A stretch of 64,000 nucleotides of DNA from Cyanophora paradoxa CCMP329 (lineage: Eukaryota > Plantae > Glaucophyta). The notes beneath the pieces are model-generated. The model saw nothing but the letters and a program-made list of their open reading frames with translations, had not been told where the DNA came from and did no database searches. A program made the translations under genes and the position numbers. Shown here one piece after another: positions 4,461 to 11,000 of this stretch (its first letter is position 1; the number at the start of each line of letters is the position of its first letter). The stretch is taken from positions 124,001 through 188,000 of the forward strand of contig QPMI01000610.1 in assembly GCA_004431415.1 (NCBI GenBank). The letters run 5' to 3'.

Positions 4461-4869
4461 GGCCGGCCCCGCCCCCGCGCCCCCCTCCCCCTCTAGATTT
4501 ACACCCCTGTATGCCTCGCTGTCCATAATTGGTATTAATATTGAATTGATTGCCTCAATGCCTCGCGCTTGCGTGATTGGTATTAATATTGAAATTCGAA
4601 GGTAGGGCTTCTGCACACGCAACGCCGAATTGAACGCTGCTATGTTCTTGATCATGAAGTTGCTTGCAGTACACAGACTTTCATGTTTGGAAGATGATCA
4701 TGACATCAAATTCGCAATTGTTTGAAAGATGATCATGACACAATTCACCAAAAACATTCACATCAAAATAAGCAATTTGTCTAGTAGACTTTTAGTTCGA
4801 AAGATGATATCAAACTCAAAATATCATTTTATAAATATTAAAAGAAGCCCAGTACTAGTACTAGTACAT

Positions 4870-7529
4870 TTAGAACCAGGAGCTTTTCTTTTTCTGCTCG
4901 GCCTCAAGCTGCTCGAGCTGCTTCTGAAGTTTAAGGTAATCTGCATGTTGCTTCTCAAGCTTCTGGTTCTGCTGCTCGAGCTTTTGCAATTCGATCTTTT
5001 GCTTCTCGAGCTTCTGCTGATCACGTTTTTTCTGTTCGATTTGCTGCTGCTCAAGCTGCTCGAGCTGCTTTTGAAGTTTTTGGAACTCTGTCTGTTGCTT
5101 CTCGAGCTTCTGCTGCTCGAGCTTTTGCCATTCAAGCTTTTGCTTCTCGAGCTTCTGCTGTTCAAGCTTCTGCTGCTCGATTCTCTGCTGCTCAAGCTGC
5201 TCGAGCTGCTGCTGAAGTTCTCGGAGCTCAGATTTTTGTTGCTCAAGCTTCTGCTGCTCAAGCGTTTGCCATTTCAACTTCTCTTCCTCGAGCTTCTGCC
5301 GTTCAAGCTGCTGAAAATCGATTTTCTGCAACTCAGAAGCTTGCAGCTGCTTCTGAAGCTCGAGTTTCTGGCTGTGGATCGAGAAGAAGCAAATCGCGAT
5401 GACCAGCGCAATACCCGATGCCGACCAGAGCGCTGTTTCCCTTCGCTTGCGCTGCCTCCGTCTCTGTTGCTGCTGCTCACGCTCCTGCTGCTCACGCTCG
5501 ACCTGTGCAGCAGTCTCCATTTCTCGCAGCAGTCTCTGGTTGTGCCTCTGCGTCTTTCTGCATACATGCACGCGTATGAATTTTCTGAGAATGGAGAAAG
5601 ATAGATTCGAATACATTAAAAGCACTGACAGATCGCTGGCCTCGATGATGTCGTGGTAGCTTTCGGAGAACAAAAGGTCGCGTACAAGGCCGAGGTCCGA
5701 GTGCGCCGGGTCGTCCACTGTACATGTGCATGCCCTCCTAACGATCAGCACGAAGGAGAATAACGTATTCAGGACGCTGGGTAGATCTAGAGCGCACCGA
5801 AGCAGGATCCCCAGTTGTACCTGCGGTAGAGACGGCCTTCTTCCGAGGCTTCCGTGGAGGTCACGATCGAGTAAGGCTGCACGGGGCCAAAAGCTCCCTG
5901 CGCAGGTAGATTTAGTTCCAAGTTCGTACTAATGCGCATGCAGGCCCTCATGATCAGTTGGTCGACGTCATGATTTTCTAGCTATATCTAGCTAGCTAGC
6001 TTAAGCCATGGTCATGATCATGATTATGATCATTCAAAAAGCGGGAAAAGCGGGCGAACCCTGACGCCCCTGTTGATGTTGCAGGTGAAAGTTTCGATGT
6101 TGTTCTCGCCAAGACTCTCCCGCACCTTGCATGTTATGATGCATCCATATGCATAAGCACATGTGCACGTGCACGCATATGCATGCGCACATGCAGTAAA
6201 GGGAACAACGAGCACGTGCACCTGGGTTGAGAATTGCGTGGCCTCGTTCGTGGTCATGGCGTCCGACTTGGCGATGACGACAACCAGGTTCGTGAGTTCG
6301 CCGAGCCGCCGCAGGACTTGCACGTCGAATTCGGCGAGACGGCTGCCGAGCTCGAGTTGGATTTGCAATTGCGATCAAGGAACAGACCTAGATCTAGATC
6401 TAGATCTAGATTGCAGATGCATATGCAGACATGTACAGGGATGCAGAATTACAAAAGATAGGGCTCACCTGTGTGGCGCGATGAAATAGATAACGACGTG
6501 AACCCGAGGATCGGGGTCCCTCACTTCGCTGTACAGCCGCATTTTCTGCATCTCCGAATATCTCACATAGCAGCCGTTGACGTAATCCTCCACGCCCTGG
6601 AGCCTGTTGAGACATTAATAAATATTCGCTCTTCAGGCGCACGGCATCCAGATTAACGGACCAGCTCATGCCGTTCAGCGACGTGTAGCCGGGGAAGTCG
6701 ATGAAGGTCATGTCCAGGTTCGAGCCGGGCAGGGGCGGCACCGGAATCTCCCGCCGCTCCCTCGTCGGCTCCCGCAGGTCGAACCTGCGCGCGAATTTTG
6801 ATTTGATCAGAATCAGAGCGCAAGCGCAAGTTAACTGGCTGACCTTCTCGCGATGTCCTCGAGATCATTCTTTTGCAGGCCGTACTGGTGGAGGAGAGAG
6901 AAGATCGCCGTCGTCTTTCCTGTTCGCAAGCATGATCATGATCATGAGCTCGAGGGTGCGCGCGCGCGACTGCTGCAGCTTCATACGACGCGCGCGTACC
7001 GAGGCCCTCCGCGCCTAATCATGTGCATTCGCATGATCATGATCACGTGCACGTTCATGTCATGATCAGAGCGCGCGCGCGAGCGATCGGGGGCGCGTGG
7101 GAGGGGTCCAGAACGGACCAACGACTCCGACGTTGAGTTTGCGACGTTTGCCATCCTCCGGAACGCGCAGGGCGTCCTTGGGCGCGCGAGTCGGATCTTG
7201 GGGTTCAAGATCCTCCATAGGCGGGATGGTCGACATGTCCATCATGCTGCTGGTCGGGCTCGTGGGTTCAGCTCTTCCTGTTCCAGAAGGGCCAGCGCGG
7301 TCGACGAAGACGTAGACGGCAGCTGCAATCAAGGCGCCGGCGAACGCGAGCTGTCAGCTGGCAGCCGCGCGTTCGAGGCTGGGCGCATGCGCACGCGCGC
7401 GCAGTCTAAATGGCTAGGGAACGTACTTTCGATGGCGCCCGCGTGCTGAGAACCTGAACCAGCAGTGGCTCCAGCTGTCGCCTTTGGACCGTCGCTGTCC
7501 GGATCCACGTCGCCGTCAACGTGCGCCAT
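4870..7529 (-). CDS. Septin GTPase with C-terminal transmembrane helix and pentapeptide-repeat coiled coil
   Basis: Spliced motifs: G1 NVGVVGAEGLGKTT, G3 FIDFPGY, DPRVHVVIYFIAPH, G4 VVIAKSDAMT, septin-unique element RRYNWG...DPAHSDLGLVRDLLF. These are followed by hydrophobic ALWSASGIALVIAICFFSI and (Q/K)KLEQ repeats. Confidence 0.85.
4905..5365 (-). repeat. Coding 15-bp (5-aa, KLEQQ-like) tandem repeat in the septin C-terminus
   Basis: Recurrent CTGCTCGAGCTT/CTCAAGCTT units on the + strand; translation QKLEQQKLEKQKLEWQKLEQQ... Confidence 0.85.
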
Positions 7530-8094: not shown

Positions 8095-11000
8095 CTATAT
8101 TTGCTTGACGGTGAGGTCGAGGCGGATGTTCATCGCCGCGAGCTCGTGCGCCAGGTACACCAGCACGTACCTGCCCCCGAAACGGTTCAGACCGCGGGAG
8201 AGAAGTGGGCGGGGGCGGGGGCGGGCGGGGCGCACGGGACGTTGACGGTGGTGATGGAGCGGTTGCCGGCGTCGCCGCAGGCGCGGCAGACGTAGGCGCC
8301 GCCCATGGGCCCCCCCTTTAGGCCCGGCGGCACGAGCGTCTCGGCGACGACGGCCGTCTCCTTGAGGGTGGTGCCCATGGCGGCGGCGACGGCGGCGGCC
8401 TCGGCGACCTCGGCGGCGCGCCCGTGGGCCGACTCGTAGCGGCGGTGGACGGCGACGAGGCTCCCGCACTTGCCGCAGACTTGCGCGCGGTGGTCGTCCG
8501 AGCAGCGCATGAGGCGGTCGTAGAGGAGGTAGGAGCAGCCGTGCGCCAGCAGCGAGTCGCGCTCCATCTCGCCCAGGCGGATGCCGCCCCCGACCTTGCG
8601 CCCCTTGACCGGCTGCCTGTGCAGCTGGTTCACCGGGCCCGTCGACCGGACCTGCGCGCCCGCAAACACAAGCTCAGCTCGGCCGTCAAACGTGTTTGAG
8701 ATAGAGCCAGACGGGCCTGGTACTTGTCGGAGACCATGTGGCGGAGGCGCTGGTAGTAGACGACGCCGATGAAGATGTCGGCGTGGAACTCCGTCCCCGC
8801 GATCCCGCTGTACATCGCCTCGTTCCCAAGCCGCTGGTACCCCGCCGCCGCCAGCTGCGCGGGAGGGGCGGCGTCAGCGTCAGAAGGAAGGCAACAGACG
8901 TGTGCTTTTCACGCCCCGGCGGCCCGGGGCTCAATTTGGCAGTCCGCTAGATCATCAGCAAGTGACGGAAAACGGAAAAGCGGGAAGAGAACGGCGCGGG
9001 GATCAGAAGGAAGGCAACATGGGTTGGTGTTTCATGCCCGTAGGCTCAAAAATCGCAATATCCATAGTCTCGTCAGATCGCGCAGCTCTAGATCAAAGAA
9101 ACGTGAAAAACAAAGATCAAATCATAACGTGGATCAGAGGAAGGCAACTGGTTTTATGTTTCACGCCCGTAGGCTCAAAAGCGCATATCCATGTTATCGT
9201 CATTTCACGTTTAGCTTTAGAGAACGGATCGGCGCGGGGATCAGAAGGAAGGCAACATGGGTTGGTGTTTCACGCCCGTAGGCTCAATAATCGCAATATC
9301 CATAGTCTCGTCAGATCGCGCGGCTCTCAAAAAAACATGAAAGAAAATAAGATCAAACGGCGCGGGGATCAGAAGGAAGGCAACATGGGTTGGTGTTTCA
9401 CGCCCGTAGGCTCAATAATCGCAATATCCATAGTCTCGTCAGATCGCGCGGCTCTAGATCAAAGAAACGTGAAAAACAAAGATCAAATCATAACGTGGAT
9501 CAGAGGAAGGCAACTGGTTTTATGTTTCACGCCCGTAGGCTCAAAAGCGCATATCCATGTTATCGTCATTTCACGTTTAGCTTTAGAGAACGGCTCGGCG
9601 CGGGGATCAGAAGGAAGGCAACATGGGTTGGTGTTTCACGCCCGTAGGCTCAATAATCGCAATATCCATAGTCTCGTCAGATCGCGCGGCTCTAGATCAA
9701 AGAAACGTGAAAAACAAAGATCAAATTATAACGTGGATCAGAGGAAGGCAACTGGTTTTATGTTTCACGCCCGTAGGCTCAAAAGCGCATATCCATGTTA
9801 TCGTCATTTCACGTTTAGCTTTAGAGAACGGCTCGGCGCGGGGATCAGAAGGAAGGCAACATGGGTTGGTGTTTCACGCCCGTAGGCTCAATAATCGCAA
9901 TATCCATAGTCTCGTCAGATCGCGCGGCTCTCAAAAAAACATGAAAGAAAATAAGATCAAACGGCGCGGGGATCAGAAGGAAGGCAACATGGGTTGGTGT
10001 TTCACGCCCGTAGGCTCAAAAATCGCAATATCCATAGTCTCGTCAGATCGCGCAAAAAAAGACCGAGGCGCTATCCCCGAGCCCGCCCATCTAGACCCTC
10101 GAAAACGAAAAGCTAGTGCTAGCCGCCCCGCTAAAAGCGTCGCCAAGAGGGAGGCCTGGCACCTGCTCGGCGAAGTAGTCGACAGCGCGCTGCTTCTCGT
10201 CGAAGCGGAAGGGGGTGCCGTCCTGCCAGAGCCCGTGCAGCGCGCCGGCCTTGCCCGCCATCGACTCGATGAGCATCCCGATCGTCATGCGCGACGGGAA
10301 GGCGTGCGGGTTGATGATGACCTGCGCGGCGAGCGCTTAGCTGGGTGGGCGCCCAGAGGCGGGAGGCCCCGCCGCGCGAGGGAGGGGTCGCCGCCGCACG
10401 TCGGGGCGGATGCCGGACTCGGAGAAGGGCATGTTCTCGTCGGGCCAGAGCTGGCTCATCACGCCCTTCTGCCCGTGCCGCGACGAGAACTTGTCCCCCA
10501 CGATCGGGTTCCGGTTGAAGCGCAGCTTGACGCCCACCTTCTGCACCTCGTTCTCGTTCGTCCCTGCGGCCCCGCCGCCGTCCGTCAGGGCGCGCGAGGG
10601 GCCACGCGAGGCGGGGGAACGCGGAGGGGGCACCGAGGACCCGGACTTCCTCGACGAAGGCCGGCTCGTTGTACTTGTACTCGACGATCTTCGCCCGCTG
10701 TGGGGGCGCGCGACCGCGCGTGAGGCCCGCCCGGCGCGCCCAGCGGCGCGGCGGGCGGTGCGGGCGGACCTGGGTCGTGTCGTCGTAGTACGCGTAGAAG
10801 GGGTCGCCCTTCCGGATCGGCTGGCCGACGAAGCTGCGCGGCGGCGACTGAGTAAGCTTCCGTGGAGAGCAAAGGCTGGCGGGCGGGGCGGGGCGCACGG
10901 GAGGCCGTCGGCGTCGATCTTGTCGGGGGCGAGGAGCTTGTTGGGGTCCTTGGGGTCGCGCCCCGTGAAGTGGTGCGTGATCGGCATGCCCCGGATCTGC

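Follow-up and report, generated by a model that had tools for sequence, protein, structure and literature searches.

The closest described counterparts of the locus analysed here are the box C/D snoRNAs snR52 of yeast, SNORD83A/B of human and Z13 (the monocot 'snoR120') of plants, which share with it the D-guide core UGCCUUCCUU directly upstream of box D. Yeast snR52 guides 18S-A420 (PMC9418376), SNORD83A has been assigned to human A468 (PMC5027482), and the monocot snoRNAs with this guide core have the predicted 18S target AAGGAmAGGCAGC (PMC5122169 supplement). With respect to gene organisation, clusters of homologous snoRNA isoforms arising from local duplication, many of them intronic, are a described arrangement in Chlamydomonas (PMC7671301). 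Such homologous clusters also occur in rice and Arabidopsis, and in plants and Chlamydomonas the clusters are either intronic or independent (PMC7671301; PMC2875012). For the polycistronic snoRNAs of plants, the described processing pathway consists of cuts in the spacers followed by trimming (PMC2875012). Our literature search found no snoRNA studies of glaucophytes or Cyanophora. Chen et al., in 2008 (Genetics 179:21), reportedly dealt with the intronic snoRNA gene clusters of Chlamydomonas reinhardtii.

The locus lies in a stretch of 64,000 nt of the genome of Cyanophora paradoxa CCMP329 (contig QPMI01000610.1, positions 124,001 to 188,000), which is hereafter called the window and in which all coordinates are counted. 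Our analysis suggested that the array is likely to comprise ten box C/D snoRNA genes in an intronic polycistronic cluster, formed by lineage-specific tandem amplification of one snR52/SNORD83-type guide, and from the sequence we infer its processing, its assembly into RNPs and its role in methylation. The predicted target adenosine, the overall size and the box order agree with those of snR52, SNORD83 and Z13. The array differs from them in that its guide has U where theirs have C, giving a G-U pair, in that nine of its copies carry UGACGA as box C, and in that one intron holds ten copies of the gene as compared with a single copy.

In the array, as in the clusters of plants and Chlamydomonas, several snoRNA genes share a single spliced intron and have the orientation of the host gene. 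Those clusters are processed from a polycistronic precursor, and the array would presumably be processed likewise. The host, a Pol I subunit gene, is unlike those of the clusters compared, and ten copies of a single guide stand at the high end, in comparison with the two to three copies of intronic clusters in Arabidopsis (PMC2875012). Since intronic clusters of homologous snoRNAs have already been described in Chlamydomonas and plants, the novelty implied by a preliminary description of this DNA did not hold up.

The same description had found the architecture reminiscent of the TIGR arrays of prokaryotes and phages, with which the locus shares a look only, namely tandem units in which conserved motifs flank a guide segment. 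TIGR systems have a distant link to Nop-domain proteins. Their units carry differing guides, whereas the ten D guides of the array are alike, except that type B is one U short; the array, in contrast to TIGR, also sits in a spliceosomal intron of a eukaryotic gene and has boxes of the snoRNA type. It is on this uniformity of the D guides that the comparison fails. Identical guides indicate gene amplification and provide no library of different guides, and the analogy was ruled out as superficial.

Host gene and layout of the array

The array occupies an intron of 1308 nt with GT..AG borders (10162 to 8855, minus strand). We found that spliced contigs from the RNA runs X15 and X17 joined 8854 straight to 10163, with exactly this intron removed, and that the same contigs also skipped both neighbouring introns, of 65 and 78 nt, as compared with which the array intron is about 20 times longer. 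The two flanking exons were each queried singly against PDB. For the upstream exon, phmmer placed RPA2/RPA135 at the top (7aoc, 7ob9 and 4c2m; E 4e-21 to 5e-19), in comparison with E values no better than 2e-09 for Pol III and Pol II subunits; for the downstream exon, RPA2 was again the best match (E about 1e-13). Because both exons match RPA2/RPA135 far better than the Pol II and Pol III subunits, the host gene is identified, from its sequence, as RPA2, encoding the second-largest subunit of RNA polymerase I. The minus-strand orientation of the units, the exon matches and the splicing of the intron in RNA contigs together bear out the earlier placement of the array in one RPA2 intron, on the sense strand.

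A script locating each box C to box D found ten head-to-tail units in the order AABABAABAT, with six of type A (73 nt), three of type B (69 nt) and one diverged terminal unit of type T (78 nt). All ten units claimed in the preliminary description were thus located on the minus strand, with complete anatomy in the claimed box order. The features, in the direction of transcription, are as follows.

10163 to 10321, minus strand: upstream RPA2 exon of 53 codons, ending ...VDYFAEQ (phmmer against PDB; borders from spliced contigs)
8855 to 10162, minus strand: host RPA2 intron, oversized (sequence; spliced contigs X15 and X17)
9973 to 10045, minus strand: unit 1, type A, 73 nt, edge variant (GAUUU precedes D') (script; Rfam snoU83B, 23.0 bits)
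9845 to 9917, minus strand: unit 2, type A (script; Rfam snoU83B, 25.4 bits, E 0.012, gathering 35)
9738 to 9806, minus strand: unit 3, type B, 69 nt, one U short in the D guide (script)
9607 to 9679, minus strand: unit 4, type A (script; Rfam)
9500 to 9568, minus strand: unit 5, type B (script)
9369 to 9441, minus strand: unit 6, type A (script; Rfam)
9241 to 9313, minus strand: unit 7, type A (script; Rfam)
9134 to 9202, minus strand: unit 8, type B (script)
9003 to 9075, minus strand: unit 9, type A, edge variant in C' (AUGAAA) and ahead of D' (GAUUU) (script)
8880 to 8957, minus strand: unit 10, type T, 78 nt, canonical UGAUGA box C, 7-bp hairpin (script; Rfam snoZ13_snr52, 22 bits, gathering 47)
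8873 to 8877, minus strand: branch-point-like CUGAC, with the A located 19 nt upstream of the 3' splice site (read from sequence)
8717 to 8854, minus strand: downstream RPA2 exon, ending ...KYQ (PDB matches; spliced contigs)

Tandem Repeats Finder gave periods of 128 (A), 238 (A-B) and 366 nt. In two independent DNA runs, the A unit, present as four identical copies, showed a depth of about four times that of the flank, and the A-B piece about twice, these depths being those of short-read contigs. Fourteen DNA runs from 13 studies contained the same share of array words. Because the depths fit the assembly and the 14 runs agree on the word share, the assembled copy number is not an assembly artefact. 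The two edge A copies (units 1 and 9; 10021 to 10045 and 9051 to 9075) have GAUUU before D', in comparison with GAUUA in the four interior A copies, and AUGAAA occurs as C' in unit 9 alone; such variants in the edge units are an edge effect typical of homogenisation by unequal crossing-over. Copies of one type are nearly identical, so that selection cannot be read within types. The spacers had all been called U-rich, which was the case for six of the nine (42-45% T in the A-to-A and B-to-A spacers) and not for the three A-to-B spacers (18-21% T); the A-to-T spacer has 38% T.

The array is richer in AT than its surroundings, in a window with a GC content of 56-81%. Another AT-richer stretch (4729 to 5751, 56% GC) contains a 141-nt tandem repeat and, on its minus strand, a 293-codon ORF that is rich in Q, E, K and L and coiled-coil-like. 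Through the array itself run two antisense ORFs on the plus strand, of 327 codons (8902 to 9885) and 366 codons (9623 to 10723). These are open only because the repeat is without stop codons, and they are artefacts which a gene caller could take for genes.

Of the branch-point-like motifs in the host intron, CUGAC at 8877 to 8873 appears, from the sequence, to be the best; the introns on either side carry CUGAG and CUAAG about as far from their own 3' splice sites. This motif overlaps the 3' strand (UGACG, 8876 to 8872) of the external stem of unit 10, which ends 25 nt from the 3' splice site. For intronic snoRNAs of vertebrates, a distance of roughly 50 nt to the branch site is preferred, and unit 10, whose external stem is overlapped by CUGAC, would lie much nearer than that. 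Given the overlap at 8872 to 8877, branch-site recognition and snoRNP assembly on unit 10 may compete. The next RPA2 intron (8652 to 8716, minus strand, 65 nt) has GC..AG and not GT..AG borders, once the reading frame KYQ|VRSTGPVNQ sets the joint, which the RNA contigs alone leave ambiguous by 4 nt.

Box C/D anatomy and divergence of the unit types

Each unit has, in order, box C, a variable D' guide, D', a hairpin, C', a variable linker, the D guide and box D. The D' box (UUGA) and box D (CUGA) are the same in all ten units, and the C' box is GUGAAA in nine units and AUGAAA in unit 9; C' and D' are degenerate, as is usual for these boxes, and are closed by a hairpin in every unit. The D guide GUUGCCUUCCU(U) is present in all ten units, with one U fewer in the three B units, while the D' guides, of 17-20 nt, are variable, with only three variants among the ten units. 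The guide-plus-box-D motif occurs seven times exactly, as compared with 0.00 occurrences expected from shuffles, the three B units being one T short of it. Types A and B share the internal hairpin GCC-UACG-GGC, and type T has GCCCCGG-GCCG-CCGGGGC, pairing being kept with a different sequence.

We found external stems of 5-6 bp, beginning 3-5 nt before box C and 2-4 nt after box D, in each of the three types. All are Watson-Crick paired, with three different sequences (GCGCG/CGCGC, AACGUG/CACGUU and CGUCA/UGACG). The chance of such a stem in a random flank pair is about 0.05 (5 bp), 0.012 (6 bp) and 0.05 for the respective types, so that each stem alone is weak evidence, and their occurrence together by chance is unlikely.

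Folding of the whole units was not informative (z-scores -0.3 to -1.7). An undistinctive folding energy is normal for C/D guide RNAs, in which the antisense elements have to remain unpaired. The spacers showed no significant structure (z -2.1 to +0.9) and no stem of the RNase III type. At gathering thresholds, Rfam gave no match in the whole window; its E-value mode returned only weak matches to snoU83B, U83 and Z13/snr52, the best being 25.4 bits for RF00593 snoU83B (type A; gathering 35) and 22 bits for RF00335 snoZ13_snr52 (unit 10; gathering 47). Because the scores lie below gathering for every unit, we file the units, by their guide, as putative functional equivalents of snR52/SNORD83 and not as members of a curated family. 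No further snoRNA candidates emerged when the window was screened strictly, with RUGAUGA, CUGA and a stem of 5 bp or longer all required.

Box C has the canonical hexamer in unit 10 only (UGAUGA, in the context CUGAUGA), in contrast to UGACGA, with a change of U5 to C, in the nine A and B units. The G-A dinucleotides of the kink-turn are intact in the UGACGA units, and type A has no purine before the UGA of box C. The U that is altered to C normally makes the U-U pair of stem II. The papers searched show UGACGA in one role only, that of a degenerate C' box (PMC11971394). A non-canonical box C in nine of ten units, with no precedent in that literature except as C', would fit a scenario in which unit 10, with its canonical box, possibly joined by a few more, is the working snoRNA, and in which the nine A and B units are a snoRNA-derived satellite of amplified pseudogene copies, transcribed along with the intron and then degraded. 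The near-identity of copies within a type, which indicates recent amplification or homogenisation, also accords with such a satellite, an explanation that we regard as unlikely.

The comparison between types speaks against it. We defined the conserved class as boxes C, D', C' and D plus the 12-nt D guide (32 positions), and the rest as the flanks, the D' guide and the linker. Identity between A and B was 31/32 in the boxes and D guide as compared with 30/49 in the rest (Fisher p 1e-4); the corresponding values were 31/32 and 27/50 for A and T (p 1e-5), and 30/32 and 22/47 for B and T (p 8e-6). Outside the boxes and the D guide, the three types are about 50-60% identical. The A and B units have thus diverged elsewhere (22-30 of 47-50 positions identical among the three types, versus 30-31 of 32), yet all four boxes and the D guide persist in both, as do the hairpin and an external stem with compensated pairing. 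This agrees with the earlier observation that strongly differing types retain the boxes, the hairpin and the D guide. This concentration of conservation in the boxes and the D guide would be hard to explain without selection on the A and B lineages. Since both A and B, though diverged, retain UGACGA, it appears to be tolerated as box C.

Predicted 18S target and guide register

The D guide is complementary to the conserved 18S segment AAGGAAGGCAGC, which is near-universal in eukaryotes. Pairing was made against the longer conserved eukaryotic 18S stretch AAGGAAGGCAGCAGGCG. The duplex so formed comprises 17 bp with two G-U pairs in type T, the longest of the three, 13 bp with one G-U pair in type A, and 11 bp in type B. 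By the D+5 rule, types A and T point to the first A of GGAAGG (AAGGAmAGG), and the predicted target is the snR52/SNORD83 site, equivalent to yeast Am420 and human Am468. This assignment, already proposed in the preliminary description, is upheld by the pairing, by the D+5 rule, by the Rfam snoU83B consensus, whose guide core and box D are identical to those of the array, and by the published assignments of snR52, SNORD83A and the monocot snoRNAs. For the D' guides, no targets were found within the window beyond the array's own complement. The D' guides are unlike the snR52 guide for 25S U2921, judging by a comparison with the yeast 25S A-loop sequence.

In the three type B units (9738 to 9806, 9500 to 9568 and 9134 to 9202, minus strand), one U fewer before box D moves the D+5 position to the neighbouring adenosine. 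This shift, which the preliminary description did not mention, may be a second methylation register or a defect. The shorter pairing of A and B (13 and 11 bp, as compared with 17 bp in T) and the loss of one guide nucleotide in B would also suit a satellite in which those units do not work. A bolder proposal is that the array encodes two guide registers, A and T on the A420 equivalent and B on the adjacent A, so that tandem duplication together with a 1-nt deletion would have created adjacent AmAm sites in a universally conserved 18S segment, and that the tenfold amplification within RPA2 would tie guide dosage to the expression of the polymerase gene; we consider it improbable that this is the case. 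We prefer the reading of the array as ten snoRNA genes amplified from one snR52/SNORD83-type guide.

That the array is an ordinary intronic satellite or transposon remnant, whose likeness to snoRNAs is accidental, is scarcely credible: the tandem layout, an AT content above that of the surroundings and the absence of Rfam matches at gathering would fit it, but an exact 12-nt methylation-guide match in the right register beside CUGA, ten times over as compared with 0.00 expected, boxes that all follow one another in the right order at the right spacing, compensated stems in each of three unit types and an orientation sense to the host gene all stand against it.

RNA evidence, origin and biological meaning

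RNA contigs inside the intron had a depth of 2-8x, as compared with 47-53x for the mRNA, and they span the spacers. They derive from libraries that are probably of the mRNA type, the array units are repeated, and RNA ends are not visible in contigs. Such contigs are no less compatible with a few per cent of unspliced precursor than with any other source, and precursor and product are not separable in them. Abundant small RNAs are not evident among them, as would be expected of a satellite whose transcripts are degraded; on the other hand, the RNA libraries used probably miss snoRNAs altogether.

The array is transcribed within the RPA2 pre-mRNA, which couples it to RPA2 only in the trivial sense of co-transcription; any further coupling of guide output to Pol I expression, as put forward in the preliminary description, is hypothetical. 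Each unit would then bring box C and box D together into a kink-turn, aided by the external stem of 5-6 bp, and would bind Snu13, Nop56, Nop58 and fibrillarin. Exonucleases acting on the excised intron would free the outermost units only; the interior units would presumably require endonucleases to cut the spacers, which are unstructured, and exonucleases then to trim back as far as the assembled snoRNPs. The mature D guide, paired with 18S AAGGAAGGCAGC, is predicted to direct 2'-O-methylation of the adenosine equivalent to A420/A468.

With regard to origin, the array probably arose by local tandem duplication, through unequal crossing-over of the A monomer and of the A-B dimer. Unit 10, which is more diverged and lies beside the 3' splice site, is probably the founder and closest to the ancestral single copy. 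Among 80 metagenomic RPA2 loci (68-83% identity on the exon), none contained the guide motif, and 75 of 77 had no intron at the site of the array. One locus with a nearby intron of 230 nt showed no Rfam snoRNA in it. Because the guide is absent from the 80 loci and there is almost no intron at the site, the pairing of RPA2 with this snoRNA is lineage-specific, an accident of gene position at the time of amplification and not an ancient partnership.

The array reveals no new kind of RNA system, its layout being known from plants and green algae. Two modest points of interest are UGACGA in place of the canonical box C and the displacement of the type B guide register by one nucleotide. The array accounts for an intron of 1.3 kb next to introns of 65-78 nt, and its reading as snoRNA genes removes a spurious antisense ORF of 327 codons. 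It also leads to the prediction that the 18S adenosine equivalent to A420, and possibly its neighbour too, would be methylated. Taken together, these results provide a clear added example of intronic snoRNA gene amplification, in the glaucophyte lineage.
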